DNA of 64,000 nucleotides, taken from sequence record NC_041911.1; one strand, written 5' to 3'. The notes under the pieces were generated by a model that worked only from the letters and a program-made list of their open reading frames with translations, was not told the origin of the DNA and did no database searches. How positions within the stretch are numbered: the stretch's first letter is position 1; the number at the start of each line of letters is the position of its first letter. Shown here piece after piece: positions 13,288 through 29,698 of the stretch. Position numbers and translations under genes: made by a program.

Positions 13288-13324
13288 CAGCATAAAGCCC
13301 GGGTTTCCCCGGGCCCATATGCCG
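13288..13324. terminator. Hairpin flanked by inverted GCATA/TATGC arms
   Basis: cagcataaa-gcccggg-tttc-cccgggc-ccatatgccg. Confidence 0.75.
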
Positions 13325-13336
13325 TTGAAGTTAGGA

Positions 13337-14377
13337 TTACATGGCTTGGAAGAGGCCCACGAACACCATCAGTCCTGCGAGCCCGCCAACGTAACGATAG
13401 AAGTCAGCGGGACGGGTCTTGAAGTAACTGGCCGAGATAGCACCGCACTTGTGAACCGGGGACAACAGATAACCGGCGTATTCTGCCATCAGGATGATCG
13501 GGAAATACTGGATACCGAATAGCAACGTCATTGCCACACAGATACCAGCGTACTTACCGCTCGAACCCAGCGCAAACGATGCTGCGAAGCCGCCAGCAAC
13601 AGCCACACCGATCAGGCCAGGAGTCAGTGTGCCCATGTGTGCGATTTTGAAGAAGTTCTGGATGGCATCCGAGTTCATCTTCAGGTAGTTCGACAACACG
13701 ATCACCCCAGCAACCAACAGCAAGGTATCCCACTTGATGAAGGAGAGCAGTTCTTCAGCTCGCACTCGGTTAGTGATAACGTAGAACAATGCCACCACTG
13801 GGAAGATGAAATACGGTTCGCAGAAGATGCTTGCCGCCAGACCAGCCAAGAATGGCACGATTTGCAGCACTTCCAAAGCCGAATACGACTTGCGCACCGT
13901 TGACAGCTCGATGTCATCTTCCTGCACGTAGTTGAACACCACGAACACGAGGTAAGCCACGTAGGCGAGCAGCGGCCAAACGGTGTAGGCCAACAGTTGC
14001 GAGTACGTAAGGCTCAAACCAGCCATCATGATCAGCACGGACTTCTCCAGCGGCGACCACAAGTAGTAGTGATGTGTTGCCACGAAATCGAGCACACCCA
14101 TCTTGCCACGCGAAGCATGCGCCGAGCAACAACTGTCACGCGGTGTCTTGACGAGCGAGTCGAGGATCGGCGCTGAGACACTGACACGCCCTTCCACCGG
14201 CAGCACACCGGAGATCAGGGAGATGCCGAGCAGTGCGAGTCGTTTCGACCGCACTTTGTCAACAAACGCGACAAAGGCCGGGATGAACAACCCTCGCGTC
14301 TTGAAGATGCCTCCGATGATAAAGGCGCTCAGCAGCACGAGCAGGGCCTCCTGGCCCGAGAAGAGAAGTTTAAGCAT
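13337..14377 (-). CDS. Multi-pass membrane transporter (IT/ArsB-NhaD-CitMHS-like)
   Basis: About 10 hydrophobic segments; ISGVLPVEGRVSVSAP re-entrant motif; start overlaps the U32 stop. Confidence 0.65.
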   Translation of the reverse strand: MLKLLFSGQEALLVLLSAFIIGGIFKTRGLFIPAFVAFVDKVRSKRLALLGISLISGVLPVEGRVSVSAPILDSLVKTPRDSCCSAHASRGKMGVLDFVATHHYYLWSPLEKSVLIMMAGLSLTYSQLLAYTVWPLLAYVAYLVFVVFNYVQEDDIELSTVRKSYSALEVLQIVPFLAGLAASIFCEPYFIFPVVALFYVITNRVRAEELLSFIKWDTLLLVAGVIVLSNYLKMNSDAIQNFFKIAHMGTLTPGLIGVAVAGGFAASFALGSSGKYAGICVAMTLLFGIQYFPIILMAEYAGYLLSPVHKCGAISASYFKTRPADFYRYVGGLAGLMVFVGLFQAM

Positions 14378-15410
14378 GTTGTTGATTTTCCTTGATTTTA
14401 GCGACCGTGTCTTCACACACAGTGCACTTCCAGCAATTGAACCGACAGGTTCGGATGGTTTTCAACCAGATCTTGCGATCCAGCTCCGGCAGCACTGACA
14501 AGGCTTGACGGTAAGGATCATCGATCATTTCCCGTCGCACGAACTGCCGAACGATTTTCAGCGTCTGGTAGAACGTGTGCTTACTCTCTCGCCCATGCAT
14601 CTTGAAGACATCGACGTAGTTCGAGAGATTATCGAGCGTGCTATAGAAAGAGGGGATACTGGCAGCTTTCAGCGCCCAGAGAATGGAGTTCTCGTCCTTG
14701 ATCTTGCAGGGCGAGATATCAAACATCTCCGAAGCGAAATAGGCCTTGTCTTTCTCAGCACGACGAAGGTTGTAAGTGTAATGGTCCTGATGTACCGGAC
14801 AGTTCCCTTCACACATTTCGTTATACAGCAACGAGATGTAGAGCTTTCTTCCCAGCTTCCTTTCCATCGCTAATTTAGCAGCGTGGACTTCTTTCAGCGT
14901 GCGCTCGTCACGCATCAGAGTCCGGTCGAGGTTGATATAATCGAACCCATCTTGGAAAAGCACTGCAACTTCCGAAGCTGTCTGTACACGGCTGAGAATC
15001 GTGTTCTTGACAAACAGTTCCGGAAACTCCTGCTTCAGTCCAAACCGCAACCATGCCGTATTCGGAATGGTGACGATTCGGATACCTTCGTCATAAAGCG
15101 GACGAAAGTGCTTCACGAACGTTTGATAGTTCGCAAAGCTGGGTGAAACGGTGATGTTGTTGAAAGTAGGAGAGGCATGCAGTCCAAAGCGGTCAGCAAC
15201 GATCATCGCATTACGCGTAACTGTTGCGACTTCTTCAGGGACAATCACACCGCCCATGGCATCGTTTTGGAACGGGGGTAGCCGGCAGGTGAAGTACAAG
15301 TCCGAGATAACGTCCTTGCACTCCTCCAGAAACGGATACACATCCCGCTCGATCTCCTCTGGACTCAAACCGGGCCACAGAGGGATCGAGAACTGGATGT
15401 CTTTCAGCAT
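14370..15410 (-). CDS. U32-family-like Fe-S protein
   Basis: DYINLDRTLMRD, YNEMCEGNCP, distal SPC, FKMHGRE, C-terminal CxxxCxxCxxC. Confidence 0.7.
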   Translation of the reverse strand: MLKDIQFSIPLWPGLSPEEIERDVYPFLEECKDVISDLYFTCRLPPFQNDAMGGVIVPEEVATVTRNAMIVADRFGLHASPTFNNITVSPSFANYQTFVKHFRPLYDEGIRIVTIPNTAWLRFGLKQEFPELFVKNTILSRVQTASEVAVLFQDGFDYINLDRTLMRDERTLKEVHAAKLAMERKLGRKLYISLLYNEMCEGNCPVHQDHYTYNLRRAEKDKAYFASEMFDISPCKIKDENSILWALKAASIPSFYSTLDNLSNYVDVFKMHGRESKHTFYQTLKIVRQFVRREMIDDPYRQALSVLPELDRKIWLKTIRTCRFNCWKCTVCEDTVAKIKENQQHA

Positions 15411-16058
15411 TTAGCGATCCTGTAAGGCCAGTTGCTGATCGCGAACATCGCGCAGAGCATTCTGCGTGACGATAGCTTGACCTTGCGCCAGCGACAGAAT
15501 GCTCTGCTGCTGTTCCAGCGGCAGGTTCAGGATAGCTTCCAGAGTGCCTTTGTTGATGGTGCCGAAGTTGATCAGGTCAGAATGCACGCCACGCGCCAAC
15601 TTGTGCGTCCAGAAGTGCGCTTCGTTGACTGCGTGGAAGTTCGGATCTTGCAGCTCCTTGAGCAGCTTTTCTTTGCCGCCGAAATGCTCATCGGCAAGCT
15701 TGATCAACTGATCATTGAAGAACTGGACTTCAGCGTTCTGCTGACTCAAGATGGACTGCTTGCGATTCAGCTCGAACTCGTACCGGCGGATCTGTACATC
15801 TTGCAGCTGGCTTTCGAGTTTGTTGAACGAGCCTACTTTTTCTTTCGCTTGCTCGGCCTGCTGTTTCTTGATCTGCAACTCCTCGATATCGAAACCGATC
15901 GAGGTGATGTTTTCAAGACGTGCGCGCGTCTCGACGATAATCTGCCGCAGCTTGCGATACGGCGTGATCTGATCCTTGATCACGAAATTATCCATCTGGA
16001 ATACCGACATGCCATTCGACATATGCGGTTCGAGACTGAGGTAAAGGCTGATGTCCAT
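15411..16058 (-). CDS. Coiled-coil hypothetical protein
   Basis: Heptad-rich middle, FWTHKLARGVHSDLINFGTINKGTLEAI tail; stop abuts next ATG. Confidence 0.8.
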   Translation of the reverse strand: MDISLYLSLEPHMSNGMSVFQMDNFVIKDQITPYRKLRQIIVETRARLENITSIGFDIEELQIKKQQAEQAKEKVGSFNKLESQLQDVQIRRYEFELNRKQSILSQQNAEVQFFNDQLIKLADEHFGGKEKLLKELQDPNFHAVNEAHFWTHKLARGVHSDLINFGTINKGTLEAILNLPLEQQQSILSLAQGQAIVTQNALRDVRDQQLALQDR

Positions 16059-16072
16059 CTTGGTTACCAGGG

Positions 16073-16549
16073 TTAGAGGTTATAGTGGAGATTCTTGCGG
16101 ATGTAGGTACGTGCGTCCTCGGCAGTCGTCAGTGCATTCACGGCATCGACGTACGTTTGCACGATGTCGTCAGCAATGTCATACATCCGTTTCTTGTCAG
16201 GAATCCAGACGTTGAGCATCAGCCATTTCATGTAATCGAGCTGGATGGTCAACTGGTCTTCGCTATAAATAATAGCCCGCCTGTTTTTATTATCCACCTC
16301 AGTGCCAAACGCTACTTCCCCGTTGAAAGGGTCATACCAAAGCTTACGCCCTTGCGGGTGCTGGTAGAAGATGTGTTTGGCGTACTGCTCGTCCGGATAG
16401 TCGACAACGAACTCCGCATTCGGGGTAGTCGGACACACGACGATGAACAGGCGGTTTTCCAGTGCGCCGCCGCCTACGATTTCAAAACCATCCGGTTGCT
16501 GACTGTGATCAAACGTACCGGACTGATTCTTAACAATGAAGAATGCCAT
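16073..16549 (-). CDS. Hypothetical protein
   Basis: 158 aa; ATG abuts upstream stop. Confidence 0.8.
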   Translation of the reverse strand: MAFFIVKNQSGTFDHSQQPDGFEIVGGGALENRLFIVVCPTTPNAEFVVDYPDEQYAKHIFYQHPQGRKLWYDPFNGEVAFGTEVDNKNRRAIIYSEDQLTIQLDYMKWLMLNVWIPDKKRMYDIADDIVQTYVDAVNALTTAEDARTYIRKNLHYNL

Positions 16550-17476
16550 TTAGAACCCCTGCATCATCTGGCCAGATGACTGGGCAAGCACCAGATCCGG
16601 CAAAGTGGCGATAGCTTCGGTGGCAAGCGAGATGCGCTGGCACAGACCGTGCTGCGTATTGCCGTAACGACCCGTGGTGTCGGAGTAACCAGCCATCATA
16701 AAGCCATAACTGCTGTTCGCCAGAGCATGACTCTCACCGAAGTTGTACGAGTAGGATGAAGCTACTGTGAAGGCTTGAATCGTTGAACCGCTGACATCAA
16801 GACGGACGTTGCGACCAAGCATACCAACGAAGTAGCCGCGAGTGTTATTCACGCTCATGCCGCACGGAATCTGGATATTGCTGTCCAATGCTGATGGGCC
16901 ACCAATGCCGGACGCTACCGCCTTCGTCGTGAAGTTGAGCGTAGTAACGGATTGGTTAGCCGGCGTCAGGAAGAAACCAGCCGAGCCCGTACCGATAGCT
17001 TGTCGAGTGCTACCGTAAGGTGCACTGGAAAGCAAACCTTGGCTTGTCGGCGTATCGGTCGTCAAATCAACCTTATACCAGTCACCATCGATACTAGCTT
17101 GGATCGACGGATTGACTGTAGCCAAAATCCAAGCCTGCGAATAGACGTTCAAGTCGGACACTGACACACTCGGATCGCGCGCAGTAGTGAACGATGCAGA
17201 TGCGCTGGCGGTGATGTAGTTGAACTTGTTGTATGCTGTCGTATCACTGATCGAGAAGTAACCATTGTACGCCCCAGAAATACCAGGGCGGTAATTACGC
17301 TGGTAACCAGTGTCATACACGAGCTGCCCTACTTGCGTAGTCGTGTTGAACAGCTGCACTTTGGAGTGCACAGTAGAGTCTTTGTAGCCACCTTGCAGGT
17401 AGCCAATCGAGCGTTGTACCGGTCCCAAGTTCCCCGGGACCGTACGATTTCTCGTGAGTGCTTTTAAGAGACCCAT
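16550..17476 (-). CDS. Kelch-like beta-propeller protein
   Basis: Repeated G-Y/F-x-x-G-G blades (GYLQGG, GYFSI, GFFL, GYFVG, GFMMAG); start MGLLKAL with GAGG SD. Confidence 0.65.
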   Translation of the reverse strand: MGLLKALTRNRTVPGNLGPVQRSIGYLQGGYKDSTVHSKVQLFNTTTQVGQLVYDTGYQRNYRPGISGAYNGYFSISDTTAYNKFNYITASASASFTTARDPSVSVSDLNVYSQAWILATVNPSIQASIDGDWYKVDLTTDTPTSQGLLSSAPYGSTRQAIGTGSAGFFLTPANQSVTTLNFTTKAVASGIGGPSALDSNIQIPCGMSVNNTRGYFVGMLGRNVRLDVSGSTIQAFTVASSYSYNFGESHALANSSYGFMMAGYSDTTGRYGNTQHGLCQRISLATEAIATLPDLVLAQSSGQMMQGF

Positions 17477-17487
17477 GTTTCCCTCAA

Positions 17488-18000
17488 TTAGGCAGTATTG
17501 GCCAGGATAGCGATCGTCAGATCGGTAAGCGTGGCATCTTGCGTAGATGGCAGGCACTTCATGGCAAATTGGTCGCCCGGGTTGAGTAACAGGTCAGTTG
17601 CCAGAGTAAACGTGCCGTTGGTCGCATTCGCAGCAAAGTTCAGCGTACCAACCTGTACACCGTTCTTCATAATCGCAATGTCGAACGAAGCAGAGGCTGC
17701 AATACTACAGAAAGCAAAGCTACCCGGACAGCCAGCCAGAATCTTGACTGTGCGAACAGAAATCGCACGCATCAAGATTTCCTGTACGAGCGGCTTGCCG
17801 TTGATGAAGTTGTGAAAGTCATAGGTAGACGGACCAGCAGGTCCTTGAATACCCTGGGAGCCCGTCGCTCCGGTAGCACCCTGCACACCTTGCGGGCCCG
17901 CAGGCCCGGCAGGCCCTTGGGGTCCCGCAGGAATAGCGGCTACCTTGCCATCGACATAGCCTTGCGATGCGAGCGCTTTGCCATTAACAGGAAAAGTCAT
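17488..18000 (-). CDS. Short collagen-like fibre protein
   Basis: LASQGYVD motif, about 11 Gly-X-Y triplets, C-terminal beta-sandwich. Confidence 0.8.
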   Translation of the reverse strand: MTFPVNGKALASQGYVDGKVAAIPAGPQGPAGPAGPQGVQGATGATGSQGIQGPAGPSTYDFHNFINGKPLVQEILMRAISVRTVKILAGCPGSFAFCSIAASASFDIAIMKNGVQVGTLNFAANATNGTFTLATDLLLNPGDQFAMKCLPSTQDATLTDLTIAILANTA

Positions 18001-18148
18001 TTTTATTCCGCCACGAATATGAGTTAAAAGATACTCGACCCCTTATAAGGGTCGTAAGCTCATAGTAATCTCAGTCGCAACGGCATAAACGGCGGTGGGG
18101 GAAACCCACCGCCTTGGGTGCTCCTTAGCCCCTAAGTGCAGCCAGTGT

Positions 18149-24771: not shown

Positions 24772-26426
24772 GATGTAGCCGCATCGATCGAAATATCACC
24801 AGGAGCGGTGATAGTGAATGGAACCAGCGTCGGGCCAGTAGCAGACGTGGTGAACGTCGTCTGAGACAGCGTCACGTTCGTCGACGGCGTCAGCGTCACG
24901 TTTGCAGCAACATAGTTACCATTCGCATCCGTTACGGAGACCGTCAGTGTACCGCTAGCCGGCGCGCCGCTGTACGAGTAGCTGCCGCTATCAAACGACA
25001 GGTTGATCGTGTTAGCGGTGCCAGTCGGGTTGATGTACCACAGCTCCCATTCACACATCGTTGCGGGCGTAGCCGAAATCGGGTTGATGTACCAGAAGCG
25101 ACCAGCGGAGTCAAAGCCATGCGACCAAGCACCGTAATACTGAGTAGCGCTGACACGACCCAGTGTAACAGTGTTGGTCTTATTCAGGACACCACCAGTA
25201 CCGACCGACCAGAACTCGTAGCGGTCATCGTAGGCAACCACAAAGTTCATGCCATTGTCGTCTGCCGTGGTCATCGAGCGCGGGCTCGGTGCCAAGTTAT
25301 ACGTGCCCACGTAAGTGGCTGTATTTTTGTCGGTCAGCTTGTACACGTACATTTTCTGCAATGCCGTCGTCGGAGTGGCAGCACTGTTTTCGAAGCCGAT
25401 CACCAGTAGATATTTGTTACCATCCGTGTGGTTGATCAGTTGTACACGCATCACACCGACTTGCGTCAGTGTCATTGGGTTTTGATCCAAGGTCACCAAG
25501 TTATTGGTGATCGCTGGTGTTGCGTCCAGGCTACTCATAGCTACGCGATGGATTTCCATCGCAGTAGCGGAGCGCCAGATCACGTAGGAACTTTTCTCGT
25601 TAGAGAGAGTATCCCAAGCAAAGGACGGAGCAGATTGCGCATAACCCATGCCGGTGCTAATGGTAGAGGCTCCCGCCGGTGCACCCAGCGAGGTCGAGTA
25701 GGCAATTGCTGCCAGCGTTGCTTTAGCAACGGCTCGAACCTCCATTGTAGCCTGAATCGCGCTGGCGCCAACATACGTGTCGACAAAATACCAACGATTG
25801 GTGTCTTCGCCGACACGATGCGCGGCGAACATGGGTCCCAGAGCCCTAGAGCCAAACAAAAGCGTTGTTTGGCCAGCAGTGGTAGTGCCAACAGGAAAGC
25901 TTTCAACGCTCGCAGACAGATACGAGTTGCTGTAGTGCCGAGTCATAGCAAGCCGGCCAGCATTCACCGATGGTAACCAAACAGCTTCATGGTTCCACAG
26001 AGAAGTCGTATAGGTACTCGCACTAGCCGGATTACTGACGTTGCCGGTATTCGGGTCCCAGTCGTAAACCATAGCCAAACCAGCGTCGGAGAAGTTCCGG
26101 ATATTGCCATTCGGCAACGTCTGATGGCAAATCTCCACGCCGTTCCAGCGACCGCAAAGCACCATATCGAAATCGCTTGCGATCTGGCCCGGCGAACCTC
26201 CAGCAACGTTTGGTGTCATTGGCTGATAACCGCGCATCATTCGAATAGTCCATGCGTTGTTATACGCCACCGGTGACATGCTCGATGTCATCGGAGCCGC
26301 AGGAGCGCCGATGACTTCACTCAGGTCACTTACCCGGTACACTTTGTTATCGATGTGCAGGTTATTACCCAACTGAACAGCGAGGCGGTTGGGGAACATG
26401 CCCCGATAAGTCTTAAGTTTAGGCAT
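24768..26426 (-). CDS. Large fibre/receptor-binding-like protein (paralog 1, more divergent)
   Basis: 552 aa; C-terminal SFDSGSYSYSGAP...GDISIDAATS matches paralogs 2 and 3. Confidence 0.75.
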   Translation of the reverse strand: MPKLKTYRGMFPNRLAVQLGNNLHIDNKVYRVSDLSEVIGAPAAPMTSSMSPVAYNNAWTIRMMRGYQPMTPNVAGGSPGQIASDFDMVLCGRWNGVEICHQTLPNGNIRNFSDAGLAMVYDWDPNTGNVSNPASASTYTTSLWNHEAVWLPSVNAGRLAMTRHYSNSYLSASVESFPVGTTTAGQTTLLFGSRALGPMFAAHRVGEDTNRWYFVDTYVGASAIQATMEVRAVAKATLAAIAYSTSLGAPAGASTISTGMGYAQSAPSFAWDTLSNEKSSYVIWRSATAMEIHRVAMSSLDATPAITNNLVTLDQNPMTLTQVGVMRVQLINHTDGNKYLLVIGFENSAATPTTALQKMYVYKLTDKNTATYVGTYNLAPSPRSMTTADDNGMNFVVAYDDRYEFWSVGTGGVLNKTNTVTLGRVSATQYYGAWSHGFDSAGRFWYINPISATPATMCEWELWYINPTGTANTINLSFDSGSYSYSGAPASGTLTVSVTDANGNYVAANVTLTPSTNVTLSQTTFTTSATGPTLVPFTITAPGDISIDAATS

Positions 26427-29400
26427 TAGTTGTACTCCAAAGTAATCAACATGTCGGAACCGCTGCTACCCACTACTTGGAGGGAAACATTGCTTCCGGC
26501 AGGGAGACTGTTAGTTTCAGCCACATACATGTTGGTTTGACCGGCTGCCAGTGTGAGCGAGATATTATCGCTCGTACCGTCGGCATGATGGACAACGGCA
26601 TTCACCACGAGGTCAGTGGTAGCTACCGTACCCAGCTGCAGCCGGATACCAGCCAAGGCATGGGCATCTGCAGGCGGATACCAATTCATCGGAATCGAAG
26701 TGGTCTGAGTGATCGGACCATCGAAGGCAGCGGTCTTCTGACGGGTGAGCGTCAGCGCAGACCAAGCACCATTCTGACGAACGTAAACACCGTTGTCCTT
26801 CGGTGCCTCCAGAACATCTACCGGAATCCAGTTACCATCCTTGCGAGCGTAGAGCACGTCGTCAAAGTTGGCATCGTAGACGTTACCACCACCAAGGTAA
26901 CCCAACGCGCTCCAGGCCACCGTAGAGGTTTTCTGGAAGAACTGCAGCGATGCCGAGTTGAGGAAGTAATCCCCTACAGTGCCGTCGGCAGCCGATGGGT
27001 TGCGGGACAGTACGATCCAGCGAGTGCCCGGATCACCCTTGACACCTTGTACGCCCTGAATACCCTGAGCGCCTTGAATACCTTGAATACCCTGCAAGCC
27101 ACGCACACCCTGCGGGCCTTGGATCGGACCAACATCGATGAATGCTGTACCTGTCCATGCCCAACCATGCAGAGTGTCCTGAGCAATGTACATATCGCCA
27201 GGATTGGTGGAGGTAGCAGGCAGGTTAGCACTGGTATTAACCGTACCCAAGATTTTTACACCAGGACCCATCGGACCTTGGTCACCTTGCGGACCCTGAG
27301 CACCAGCTGCGCCAGGATCGCCTTGTGGTCCCTGAGCACCAGTATCGCCCTTTACGCCCTGCAGGCCTTGGATACCTTGGTCACCCTTGTCACCCTTCCA
27401 CTGCCCGGCATCAAGCCAGCTGACACCGTTCCACACGAAGAGATGATCGCCTACGCGATAAGCATCGCCGATGTTGTTGGTGCCGCTGACAGGCAGGGAA
27501 TTTTGGTCAGGCAGAATACCAAGCACCTTGATGCTGTTACCGGTATCGCCCTTATCACCTTTGTCACCTTTATCGCCCTTCAGGCCCTGGATACCCTGAA
27601 TACCCTGGATACCTTGTAGACCTTGTGCACCAGTGTCGCCTTTATCGCCTTTGACACCCTGTAAACCCTGAGGACCTACCGGACCTTGAATGACACCCAT
27701 GTCCGTGTACTGTGTACCATCCCAGCCCCAGAAGTGGCCGCCAATCAAATAACCCTCACCCAGCGTACCGGTAGCCGGCAGTTGCGAGGTATCTGTGAGT
27801 GTGCCAACGATACTGATGCCGGGACCCATCGGACCCTGCACACCCTGCGGACCCTGGATACCTTGGTCCCCTTGAATACCCTGGATACCCTGATCGCCTT
27901 TGTCACCTTTAATACCCTGGATACCTTGAATACCCTGGATACCTTGGTCCCCTTGAGCACCACGGAACGGACCAGCGTTCGTCCAATCAGTGCCGAGGAA
28001 GATATAAAGGTCGGTGCCTACAATGTAAGCGTCTTCCTGCGCGGGATTGGCAGGTAGTGACGGAACGTCCGCCACGACACCTTTGATCGCCAAACCACGC
28101 CCCATCGGACCCTGAGGACCGATATCGCCCTTAGCACCGACCAGCGAATTCAGCCAAGAATTCAGGTCACCTACGTAGCCATTTTCAACAGCCACTTGGT
28201 AAGCCGTAAGGCCAGCCGTGCCTTGCAGCGAAGCGATCCACTGGTCAATAGTACCAGTGAAACCACCAGCGACGGCAATATCAAAGGCAGAAGCACCGGT
28301 GGTGCCGGTATCGCCTTTCAAGCCCTGCAGACCCTGCAGACCTTGAGGTCCAGTATCACCTTTCGGACCTTGTACCAAACCGCAATCAACGAAGGCGGTG
28401 CCGGTCCACGCCCAGCCGTGCAGTGTATCGAGGGCGATATACATATCGCCCGGATCAGTGGAGGTTGCCGGGAGATCCGTGCTGCTCGGAACCGTGCCAA
28501 GAATCTTGACGCCCGGACCCATATCGCCCTTGTCGCCTTTCAGGCCTTGGGGACCAACGGGACCAATCGGTCCAATCAGAGTAGCAAGCCAGTCGGTCTG
28601 CGAGCCGGTAAAGCCATTGGCGACTGCCACATCAAAAGCAGACTTACCAACCAGCGAAGCCAACCACGCAGTCTGACCGCCTACGAAACCATTCGCTTGC
28701 GCAATCTGGTACGAAGACTTACCTTGCAGCGAAGCGATCCACTGCGACAACGTCATCGATTGCGGGATCAGGCCAGCATCCTTGGCCAGTTGGTAAGCAG
28801 ACTTACCTGCCGGACCCACCTGACCCACCGGAACCCAGTTCGTAGCGTCCCACACCCACATCACCGAGTCGATGATATACGCGTCGCCCGGAGAGTTGTT
28901 CTGCGCCGGAAGATCGCTGGTGGATTGGAACGAACCCTGAACTTTCAGGCCGATACCATCTGCGCCATGCAGAGAAGCCAGCCAATCGGCTTCCGTACCG
29001 CCAAAACCAGCCAATTGTGCCAGTTCATAGGCACTCTTGCCTTCGGGACCTTGCAGGTTGCCGAGATTCACCCACTGACCGCCCGTCACAGCCCAGAATT
29101 GCGGCCCGATCAGATAGCAATCGCCTTCTTGCGACGTAGTAACGTCAGGCAATTGAGATTGATCGGCCACAGCACCAAGCAAACGAGCACCGTTACCGAT
29201 CGGACCTTGTGCTCCGGTGTCGCCTTTGTCACCTTTCGGGCCTTTGAGCGACGCCGACCACTCAGCTTCAGTACCCGTAAAGCCACCGGCAACAGCGATA
29301 TCGTAAGCCGATGGGCCAGTATCGCCTTTGACACCTTGGATACCCTGATCACCCGGGATACCTTGGATACCTTGGTCACCTTTATCGCCCTTGTCGCCCT

Positions 29401-29698
29401 TCAGGCTGGCGACCCAGTCTGCTTCAGTACCGACAAAGCCGAGAGCGACAGCAGCGTCGTAAGCGCTCTTGCCATCCAAAGAAGCCAGCCATTCAGCTTC
29501 GGTGCCTACGTAGCCGGCTTCAACAGCGACCTGATAGGCGCTCTTACCAGCTACGAACAGTTGATCCAGAGTGAACTTGACGTTCTTACCATCCTGGACT
29601 GCCTCCACCACTTCTGCACCAGTGATCGGTGCAGCAGGCGGCAGGTCGGTAATCCGATAATACAAGGAGGGATCGAGAGAATTGGGATCGCTCATCAT
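26426..29698 (-). CDS. Long collagen-like tail fibre
   Basis: Gly-X-Y runs (GDKGDQGIQGIQG), GKSAYxxA repeats, repeated G..LP..GD.Y..W.W.G..W modules. Confidence 0.9.
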   Translation of the reverse strand: MMSDPNSLDPSLYYRITDLPPAAPITGAEVVEAVQDGKNVKFTLDQLFVAGKSAYQVAVEAGYVGTEAEWLASLDGKSAYDAAVALGFVGTEADWVASLKGDKGDKGDQGIQGIPGDQGIQGVKGDTGPSAYDIAVAGGFTGTEAEWSASLKGPKGDKGDTGAQGPIGNGARLLGAVADQSQLPDVTTSQEGDCYLIGPQFWAVTGGQWVNLGNLQGPEGKSAYELAQLAGFGGTEADWLASLHGADGIGLKVQGSFQSTSDLPAQNNSPGDAYIIDSVMWVWDATNWVPVGQVGPAGKSAYQLAKDAGLIPQSMTLSQWIASLQGKSSYQIAQANGFVGGQTAWLASLVGKSAFDVAVANGFTGSQTDWLATLIGPIGPVGPQGLKGDKGDMGPGVKILGTVPSSTDLPATSTDPGDMYIALDTLHGWAWTGTAFVDCGLVQGPKGDTGPQGLQGLQGLKGDTGTTGASAFDIAVAGGFTGTIDQWIASLQGTAGLTAYQVAVENGYVGDLNSWLNSLVGAKGDIGPQGPMGRGLAIKGVVADVPSLPANPAQEDAYIVGTDLYIFLGTDWTNAGPFRGAQGDQGIQGIQGIQGIKGDKGDQGIQGIQGDQGIQGPQGVQGPMGPGISIVGTLTDTSQLPATGTLGEGYLIGGHFWGWDGTQYTDMGVIQGPVGPQGLQGVKGDKGDTGAQGLQGIQGIQGIQGLKGDKGDKGDKGDTGNSIKVLGILPDQNSLPVSGTNNIGDAYRVGDHLFVWNGVSWLDAGQWKGDKGDQGIQGLQGVKGDTGAQGPQGDPGAAGAQGPQGDQGPMGPGVKILGTVNTSANLPATSTNPGDMYIAQDTLHGWAWTGTAFIDVGPIQGPQGVRGLQGIQGIQGAQGIQGVQGVKGDPGTRWIVLSRNPSAADGTVGDYFLNSASLQFFQKTSTVAWSALGYLGGGNVYDANFDDVLYARKDGNWIPVDVLEAPKDNGVYVRQNGAWSALTLTRQKTAAFDGPITQTTSIPMNWYPPADAHALAGIRLQLGTVATTDLVVNAVVHHADGTSDNISLTLAAGQTNMYVAETNSLPAGSNVSLQVVGSSGSDMLITLEYN

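Follow-up and report, generated by a model that had tools for sequence, protein, structure and literature searches.

A very divergent U32-type barrel protein in a widespread, fibre-linked gene module of Ralstonia phage RP12 and other phages

Results

Organization of the ORF143 to ORF138 block

The window analysed in this study is a stretch of 64,000 nucleotides from the genome of Ralstonia phage RP12 (NC_041911.1, 279,845 bp). It spans record positions 124001-188000, and the window positions used throughout equal record positions minus 124,000. We describe here a 4.66-kb block of six minus-strand genes in this window, open reading frame (ORF) 143 to ORF138. A propeller protein (ORF142), a helical protein (ORF140) and a very divergent relative of U32 enzymes (ORF139), often accompanied by a DUF401 permease (ORF138), make up a unit that is conserved among phages. 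RP12 carries a minimal form of this unit, and only the RP12 clade has the collagen gene (ORF143) and ORF141.

The block is 100% identical to RP12 and to its sibling RP31, both of them phiKZ-related jumbo phages, and every one of the six genes is recorded as “hypothetical protein”. The long minus-strand run that surrounds the block includes the tail fibre gene ORF153, the Ig-like ORF152 and the virion protein gene ORF136. Features of the block and its edges are listed below in the direction of reading.

18091-18113, minus strand: GC-rich hairpin after ORF144, read and folded, arranged like the one that follows ORF138; upstream boundary of the unit
18059-18069, minus strand: 11-base motif ATTACTATGAG, copy 1, 58 bases upstream of the ORF143 start
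17488-18000, minus strand: ORF143, 170 aa, collagen-like Gly-X-Y run and C-terminal fibre-tip-like domain (Pfam, PHROG)
16550-17476, minus strand: ORF142, 308 aa (revised start), six-bladed Kelch-like beta-propeller with a flexible conserved C-terminal tail (AlphaFold2, Foldseek)
16073-16549, minus strand: ORF141, 158 aa, no recognisable family, RP12 clade only
15411-16058, minus strand: ORF140, 215 aa, all-helical (coiled-coil) (phrog_1409, E 9e-69)
14370-15410, minus strand: ORF139, 346 aa, TIM barrel, very divergent U32 superfamily member, putative catalytic subunit (AlphaFold2, Foldseek, hhalign)
13337-14377, minus strand: ORF138, 346 aa, multi-pass DUF401 / TIGR00529 membrane protein (Pfam, NCBIfam, hydropathy)
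13288-13324, minus strand: strong GC-rich hairpin, 13 bases past the ORF138 stop codon
13272-13282, minus strand: 11-base motif ATTACTATGAG, copy 2, after the ORF138 hairpin and upstream of ORF137

The initial annotation of this stretch described the six genes as tightly coupled, and the ORF table reproduces its junctions. The stop of ORF142 (16550) abuts the start of ORF141 (16549), the stop of ORF140 (15411) abuts the start of ORF139 (15410), and ORF139, ending at 14370, overlaps ORF138, starting at 14377, by 8 bases. ORF141 and ORF140 are separated by 14 bases, and ORF143 and ORF142 by 11 bases, provided that the ATG at 17476 is the start of ORF142. In the record, ORF142 starts at a TTG at 17428 (292 aa). 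All 27 of the 27 aligned homologues have a conserved N-terminal extension that opens with Met-Gly about 16 residues upstream of the annotated TTG, and the start is therefore probably the ATG at 17476, giving 308 aa. Intergenic gaps range from -8 to +14 bases across the block, an arrangement suggesting that ORF143 to ORF138 constitute one co-directional transcription unit in the RP12 fibre region.

The edges of the block have a common layout. The hairpin at 13288-13324 has a folding energy of -27.8 kcal/mol (z -5.2), and none of 200 shuffled sequences folds equally well; it is likely to be the transcript end. The earlier claim that one terminator closes the unit agrees with the strong hairpin after ORF138, but this hairpin did not pass the intrinsic-terminator rule of our consensus scan. 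Consensus matches to sigma-70-type promoters and intrinsic terminators are no commoner in this region than expected by chance. The motif ATTACTATGAG has two exact copies in the 64-kb window, a number that is statistically unremarkable alone, being reached in 9 of 100 shuffles. A GC hairpin and a TTTATG stretch come before each copy, and a smaller second hairpin comes after it. Because this matched hairpin/motif context occurs at exactly both edges of the block, a terminator-promoter pair at each edge is plausible, and such a pair may be a cassette specific to the phage, with ATTACTATGAG as a candidate phage promoter or transcript-start element.

Relationship of ORF139 to the U32 superfamily

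The AlphaFold2 model of ORF139 is a triosephosphate-isomerase (TIM) barrel with a predicted local distance difference test score (pLDDT) of 92. When the model was compared with PDB structures in Foldseek, the best template-modelling score (TM-score) among the top hits was obtained with the U32 protein Mk0906 (5d88; TMt 0.69, root-mean-square deviation (rmsd) 4.4 Å, E 3.4e-6); MTHFR, aldolases and other barrels gave similar E-values but a TMt of at most 0.5. Among viral models, the first annotated match, at rank 4, is a phage “Peptidase” (TMt 0.72).

Family models and direct sequence searches gave a different picture. PF01136 (Peptidase_U32) matched neither ORF139 and 21 other members of the alignment at a limit of E = 10, nor 10 distant family members at a limit of E 0.01, and no NCBIfam model recognises ORF139. 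The ORF139 family profile retrieved no U32 entry from among PDB sequences, and searching PDB chains with the sequences of ORF139, ORF142 and ORF138 returned nothing useful.

A profile-profile comparison was performed with hhalign, using a U32 profile composed of E. coli UbiU, UbiV and YegQ (TrhP) together with 78 usable of 80 bacterial and archaeal genome loci. Comparing 88 ORF139-family representatives with these 81 U32 sequences gave a probability of 93.5% (E 2.3e-7, 129 columns), and the match links residues 38-177 of ORF139 to residues 24-154 of UbiU, covering barrel strands 2-6. Reversed-sequence controls scored 0.2-0.3%. The signal needs deep profiles on both sides: shallow profiles gave non-significant probabilities of 1.6% (with a three-sequence U32 alignment) and 17%. 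In a low-confidence extension of the alignment, the invariant FK[ML]HGRE of the ORF139 family corresponds to the U32 KIEGR block, and C200 to the region of UbiU C193. ORF139 is, by fold and profile, a very divergent member of the U32 superfamily.

ORF139 had initially been described as a U32-like iron-sulfur (Fe-S) protein with a CxxxC pair, a distal cysteine and a CxxxCxxCxxC tail. These cysteine patterns are real and conserved. C200 and C204 (CX3C) are present in 85 of 87 family representatives, the distal C235 in 63 of 87, and the C-terminal CX3CX2CX2C (residues 322-332) is complete in every one of the 62 representatives whose alignment reaches it. To these we add H210, six residues after C204, found in 84/87. 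The assignment to U32 is upheld by profile and fold, but the Fe-S part is unproven, as the four-cysteine U32 motif is incomplete in ORF139. This motif is CX6CX15CX3/4C, and its variants in UbiU/UbiV bind 4Fe-4S clusters (PMC6747719). ORF139 is without the first two of these cysteines, with zero cysteines in the 30 residues upstream of CX3C; a 4Fe-4S cluster is therefore not assured, and the Cys2His set could bind zinc. A cluster with three-Cys or Cys2His ligands and an open site is possible, and a mononuclear metal site would suit the Cys-Cys-His trio equally well. Besides the cysteines, about 12 polar residues of the barrel are nearly invariant, including N84, K135, R167, E198, K270 and R274, and form an active-site-like pattern.

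ORF139 thus combines shared and distinct features when set beside UbiU/UbiV, TrhP/YegQ and RlhA. The barrel fold and the significant profile-profile match are common to them, as are, in the low-confidence extension, a Lys-x-x-Gly-Arg block and CX3C at equivalent places. In contrast to these enzymes, ORF139 adds the invariant His, the distal Cys and the C-terminal four-cysteine site, and it is phage-encoded beside fibre genes, together with a propeller and a helical partner. In U32 hydroxylases, the partner is a second U32 subunit or an SCP2 protein.

Several other assignments of ORF139 were rejected. It is not a radical SAM (S-adenosylmethionine) enzyme, since it matches neither Radical_SAM nor Fer4_12 and its CX3CX2C lies after the barrel; in other phages, a true radical SAM gene lies separately, next to the U32-like gene. 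Matches to amylase C-domain and Get3 were weak and were discarded as chance. The “collagenase” label carried by U32 proteins was considered as a tie to the collagen gene and dropped because this gene is outside the conserved set.

Products of the remaining genes

Labels given to the other genes in the initial annotation (collagen fibre, propeller, coiled coil and ion-transporter-type transporter) all proved sound, on the following grounds.

The AlphaFold2 model of ORF142 (mean pLDDT 77, predicted TM-score (pTM) 0.81, 21 strands) is a propeller, and Foldseek matched it to the Kelch domains of KLHL12 and Keap1 with a TM-score of 0.67-0.74 at about 11-12% identity. Because Pfam Kelch gave no match to ORF142, it is assigned as a Kelch-type propeller at the level of fold only. 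The six-bladed fold is common to ORF142 and the Kelch propellers of Keap1 and KLHL12, but the ORF142 family is phage-borne and has a conserved C-terminal tail, and in other phages it has an N-terminal domain that also occurs in the cyanophage virion protein T4-GC_347. This family (phrog_1417) is multi-paralogue, with 1-3 paralogues per genome.

Of 125 unique family members, 112 have the motif Gly-x-Ser-Ser-Gly/Ala in the tail, 8-10 residues before the C-terminus, and it is present in all clades; in other 40-residue windows of the propeller proteins its frequency is 8%. Surrounding residues vary by clade. The tail reads …SSGHCGW… in the largest uncultured clade, …SSGQMMQGF in the RP12 clade (encoded in window 16550-16600, minus strand) and …SSATMSW… in one marine form. 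The tail of ORF142 has low confidence in the AlphaFold2 model, which is consistent with a flexible, exposed segment.

ORF143 has about 10 uninterrupted Gly-X-Y triplets in residues 25-57. Its Pfam Collagen match has an E-value of 4.8e-6 and scores 26.7 bits, 0.5 bit under the cut-off of 27.2, and tail-fibre families in PHROG match the repeat as well as the C-terminal domain. The orthologue of ORF143 in RP31 (numbered ORF140 in that phage, 17.1 kDa) was found in purified virions by mass spectrometry, with 2 peptides (PMC5468394, Table S3). ORF143 is, on its Gly-X-Y repeats and the presence of its orthologue in virions, a collagen-like fibre protein. The RP12 ORF136 orthologue is also among the RP31 virion proteins, and orthologues of ORF138-ORF142 are not in this mass-spectrometry list, which derives from excised gel bands and is shallow (PMC5468394, Table S3). 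The suggestion that the block might be a surface-displayed module therefore found no support, the collagen protein being the only one of its products detected in virions. The annotated tail fibre ORF153 (window 26426-29695, minus strand) has collagen repeats in six separate stretches (Pfam E 3.6e-34), so segments of this kind recur in RP12 fibres and are not specific to ORF143.

ORF140 belongs to phrog_1409, a large all-helical family with conserved motifs, whose counterpart in cyanophages is T4-GC_353. The family profile matched only generic coiled coils among PDB sequences, nothing informative, and weak matches to hemerythrin and TraM were discarded as chance. Tail-fibre assembly chaperones, such as T4 gp57A/gp38 and the Tfa proteins, are encoded beside fibre genes. 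ORF140 is like them in being a small helical non-virion protein directly downstream of fibre-like genes; unlike them, it lies in a module that also holds an enzyme-like barrel and a permease, and no sequence or profile similarity to them was found.

For ORF141, no match was found in Pfam or NCBIfam and no family beyond its own PHROG. Its homologues are confined to RP12-like loci (3 of the 14 lineages defined below). The possibility that ORF141 is a diverged copy of a protein of about 245 aa that occupies the ORF141 slot in other phages (f3, T4-GC_352) was ruled out, as there is no profile similarity.

ORF138 matches PF04165 (DUF401) over its full length (27-352) with 40.9 bits against a cut-off of 24 (E 2.2e-10). 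Its match to TIGR00529 (E 5e-12) is far under the curated score cut-off, and a match to CitMHS is weak. A crude hydropathy scan indicated at least 7 hydrophobic segments. These features place ORF138 among the DUF401/ion-transporter-type permeases, with transport as its predicted function. The substrate of the DUF401 / TIGR00529 (AF0261) family, part of the ion-transporter superfamily, is not known. Compared with other DUF401 proteins, the closest relatives of ORF138 among the loci examined are phage-encoded and adjoin the U32-like gene.

Recurrence of the module in other phages

Among isolated phages, the ORF139 family was found in RP12/RP31 and in 123 T4-like cyanophage records only; in the latter it corresponds to T4-GC_354, and the preceding T4-GC_353 is the ORF140 homologue. 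To survey gene neighbourhoods, we used the best 80 loci in IMG/VR, of at least 596 matching stretches, and several metagenome contigs. Predicted ORFs were clustered and searched with family hidden Markov models, and loci were dereplicated at 80% identity of the U32-like protein, leaving 14 lineages. Genes accompany the U32-like gene in these lineages as follows.

Propeller (ORF142 family): 13 of 14 lineages
Helical protein (ORF140 family): 13 of 14
f3 protein, ~245 aa (T4-GC_352): 10 of 14
Methyltransf_24 O-methyltransferase, fused or adjacent: 9 of 14
DUF401 permease, beside or near the U32-like gene: 7 of 14
Collagen-type gene (ORF143 family): 4 of 14
ORF141 family: 3 of 14
Radical SAM: 2 of 14

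Across phiKZ-like, T4-like and other phages, with identities of at most 40%, the core genes remain linked. In RP12, T4-like cyanophages and uncultured phages alike, the module adjoins genes for tail fibres, Peptidase_S74 proteins or the baseplate. The exact six-gene order is retained in RP12-like loci at 33-59% identity, and neither these loci nor the rest of the RP12 window contain a methyltransferase or a radical SAM gene. In the largest clade of uncultured phages, the order is a large fibre-like protein, three propellers, the helical protein, f3, radical SAM, the U32-like protein, methyltransferase, f5, DUF401 and f8. Marine cyanophages have the methyltransferase fused to the U32-like domain and no radical SAM gene; DUF401 is usually absent, and a tryptophan halogenase and 2-oxoglutarate (2OG) oxygenases often follow. 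One marine clade (L005/L059) has a remote f3 relative at the f3 position. Locus L093 carries a 2OG oxygenase at the radical SAM position together with DUF401, in L071 the gene order is shuffled and the module genes are still together, and on a 214-kb contig (L095) a divergent U32-like gene and DUF401 come directly after baseplate and fibre genes.

The initial annotation had treated all six genes as one cassette and had named a failure to recur elsewhere as grounds for giving it up. The genes do recur; the cassette holds for the propeller, the helical protein, the U32-like gene and often DUF401, but not for the collagen gene and ORF141. It had also stated that the combination matches no known pathway, and we likewise found no described one: a literature search on cyanophage, U32 and tail fibre returned no paper describing the module, and a search on DUF401 gave other DUF families only. 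In a cyanophage virion proteomics study of three phages, T4-GC_346 and 347 are flagged as structural and T4-GC_348-354, which these phages may or may not carry, are not (PMC3037559).

The ORF139 family is often paired with an O-methyltransferase, as a hydroxylation-then-methylation logic would predict. In Bacillus, yrrM-yrrN-yrrO brings together a U32 pair (TrhP1/2) and the 5-hydroxyuridine (ho5U) methylase TrmR for tRNA 5-methoxyuridine (mo5U). Phages have a comparable coupling of a U32-type enzyme to a YrrM-like class I O-methyltransferase, and the Joint Genome Institute (JGI) calls the fused domain “predicted O-methyltransferase YrrM”. Unlike in Bacillus, the phage methyltransferase matches Methyltransf_24 weakly and RP12 has none, the other partner genes differ, and there is no tRNA link in the RP12 window. 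No fusions of the U32-like domain with helical or propeller proteins were found in the search, and Pfam scans of distant or extended ORF139-family members for informative extra domains revealed the methyltransferase only.

Some loci deserve separate mention. In the large uncultured clade, the gene for the radical SAM protein (333 aa; L027 7988-8989, with equivalents in ~60 loci) is the one just upstream of the U32-like gene. In NCBIfam the protein most resembles viperin-like, tungsten-cofactor maturase and NrdG-type enzymes, and no isolated phage record contains a relative. The DUF401 protein of L093/L094 is named “MAG: Proteobacteria bacterium” (MAG, metagenome-assembled genome) by NCBI, and its contig carries the whole module; we assign the L093 contig to a T4-like phage, not a bacterium, because of gp13-like and gp15-like genes and Peptidase_S74 fibres. 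In the metagenome-assembled Synechococcus phage metaG-MbCM1 (L089), the f3 (T4-GC_352) and helical (T4-GC_353) homologues are each annotated in two pieces, and a DUF401 gene is situated less than 1 kb downstream of the U32-like fusion, between “tail fiber protein” and “tail fiber assembly”. Distant relatives of ORF139 were found in three other contexts (L097, L096 and L092), none with the phage partner genes. One adjoins a gene for a Rieske [2Fe-2S] protein, another is on a bacterial MAG contig with a Maf-like flagellin-glycosylation gene and an acetyltransferase, and the third is on a cellular-looking contig. Such contexts are too few for conclusions.

Further genes near the block

A tRNA-Asn (GTT) at window 7988-8063, minus strand, is the sole tRNA of the window and is ~81% identical to E. 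coli tRNA-Asn. The dCTP deaminase gene ORF134 of RP12 is a few kb downstream of the block. In an RP12-like metagenome contig (L002/L003 197-3945), NrdD, its radical SAM activase and a dCTP deaminase/dUTPase fusion are located just upstream of the fibre block.

Discussion

The association of a U32-type barrel with propeller and fibre genes can be explained if the module acts inside the cell and modifies or matures fibre-associated proteins. We hold this reading tentatively, at a probability of roughly 0.4. According to it, ORF139 would act in the infected cell with ORF140 as a U32-type redox enzyme, similar to oxygen-independent hydroxylases, with a metal centre formed by C200, C204, H210 and perhaps C235, and a second four-cysteine site at the C-terminus. 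Its target would be a fibre-associated protein, altered before assembly or in the course of it, and the best candidate substrate would be the propeller family, through its flexible tail with Gly-x-Ser-Ser-Gly/Ala. In phages with the O-methyltransferase, the new hydroxyl might then be methylated, and radical SAM or 2OG oxygenases might add a further step in some lineages. The DUF401 permease could carry a small anion, either a co-substrate or a product, through the host (inner) membrane. What the data establish is the gene order, the folds, the U32 relationship, the co-conservation and the occurrence of ORF143 in virions; metal binding, chemistry, substrate and the role of the permease are all what we infer from them.

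We favour modification because in 13/14 lineages, across phage types, the barrel is tied to the propeller as well as to fibre or baseplate blocks, because it recruits different oxidative or methylating partners by lineage, and because the products of the module are unseen in virions where the neighbouring fibre protein is seen. Hydroxylation appears the likeliest chemistry, both because the analogous U32 enzymes catalyse it and because the barrel is repeatedly found coupled to an O-methyltransferase.

A number of points weigh against this reading. Characterised U32 substrates are all small molecules or RNA, not proteins (PMC6747719, PMC10990095), and ORF139 does not have the complete set of four U32 cysteines. 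The absence of ORF138-142 from the virion list is weak evidence because the gel-band analysis was shallow. Adjacency to fibre genes could come from a shared hypervariable region and not from shared function, and the motif in the propeller tail may be simply structural. In the phage S-CAM4, the permease is 58 kb away from the U32-like gene, and one distant ORF139 relative resides on a cellular-looking 111-kb contig by S8 peptidase and Calx-beta proteins, away from any of the partner genes.

The U32-like enzyme, with the methyltransferase where present, may instead hydroxylate and methylate a small molecule or an RNA base as an auxiliary metabolic or nucleic-acid module, the permease handling a metabolite and the closeness to fibre genes being an accident of a variable region. 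The permease is of a metabolite-carrier type, tryptophan halogenase and 2OG oxygenases stand alongside in marine loci, and the YrrM name of the fused domain recalls the Bacillus yrrM-yrrN-yrrO arrangement. Known U32 enzymes act on ubiquinone precursors, tRNA U34 and rRNA C2501 (PMC6747719, PMC10990095). We nevertheless consider this explanation somewhat unlikely: 13/14 lineages have the propeller with the enzyme and 13/14 have the helical protein, the genes keep together even after rearrangement, the module is always within fibre or baseplate blocks in very different phage types, RP12 is without any methyltransferase, and the only tRNA of the window, tRNA-Asn (GTT), has no U34. A purely structural role, with ORF140 and ORF139 as non-catalytic assembly factors that chaperone propeller or fibre proteins and cysteines that hold structural zinc, would agree with the position directly downstream of fibre-like genes, with the helical, coiled-coil nature of ORF140, with the absence of both orthologues from the RP31 virion list and with Cys2His and Cys4 patterns typical of zinc sites. 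Such a role leaves aside the active-site-like set of ~12 near-invariant polar barrel residues, the repeated fusion or adjacency to methyltransferase, radical SAM, 2OG oxygenase or Rieske protein, and a permease for which chaperoning offers no obvious task, and we regard it as distinctly unlikely.

Still less credence is given to a sugar or glycan pathway, in which a metal-dependent aldolase-, isomerase- or hydrolase-like barrel would make or trim a sugar for virion proteins or the host surface, and the permease would import a sugar acid. Foldseek also lists class II aldolases, DERA, GH84/GH5 and KDO8P synthase with similar E-values, citrate carriers are among the ion-transporter-type relatives of DUF401 (the CitMHS match), and the contig of a distant ORF139 relative carries the Maf-like flagellin-glycosylation gene. 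However, those fold matches are clearly poorer in TM-score and rmsd than the U32 structure, the profile-profile match is to U32, no glycosyltransferase is part of the conserved set, and the Maf-like gene is three genes away on the opposite strand. That the six genes are merely neighbours in a dense phage genome and have no common function is barely credible. Tight packing with overlapping ends is the rule in the RP12 genome, promoter- and terminator-like consensus matches occur at chance frequency, and two of the six genes are clade-specific; against this, the core genes are found together across phage types at 40% identity or less, even when rearranged, and the matched hairpin and ATTACTATGAG frame exactly the six-gene block. 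Co-conservation largely refutes this explanation.

Modification of fibre-associated proteins, if it takes place, could be generalised. Unrelated phage lineages might carry a dedicated post-translational modification system for fibre-associated Kelch propellers, consisting of a protein-acting U32 branch, a helical adaptor, lineage-specific methyltransferase, radical SAM or 2OG steps, and a permease. In this full form the proposal is speculative and, in our judgement, unlikely.

The fold and ancestry of U32 proteins are known; new here is a U32 branch within an undescribed, widespread, fibre-linked phage module. The module is represented by at least 596 stretches in IMG/VR and by 123 records of cyanophage isolates, is annotated in every member as “hypothetical”, and is located in the part of the genome that decides host recognition. 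On the alternative explanations too, it contributes a new U32 branch outside all current Pfam models, a first consistent genomic partner for the orphan DUF401 permease family, and a phage family of Kelch propellers whose fixed C-terminal motif is striking. If the barrel does alter fibre-associated proteins, these would be a new substrate class for the recently recognised U32 hydroxylases and the first protein substrate for the U32 superfamily, and the module would represent a hitherto hidden stage of virion maturation among abundant phages of ocean and soil.

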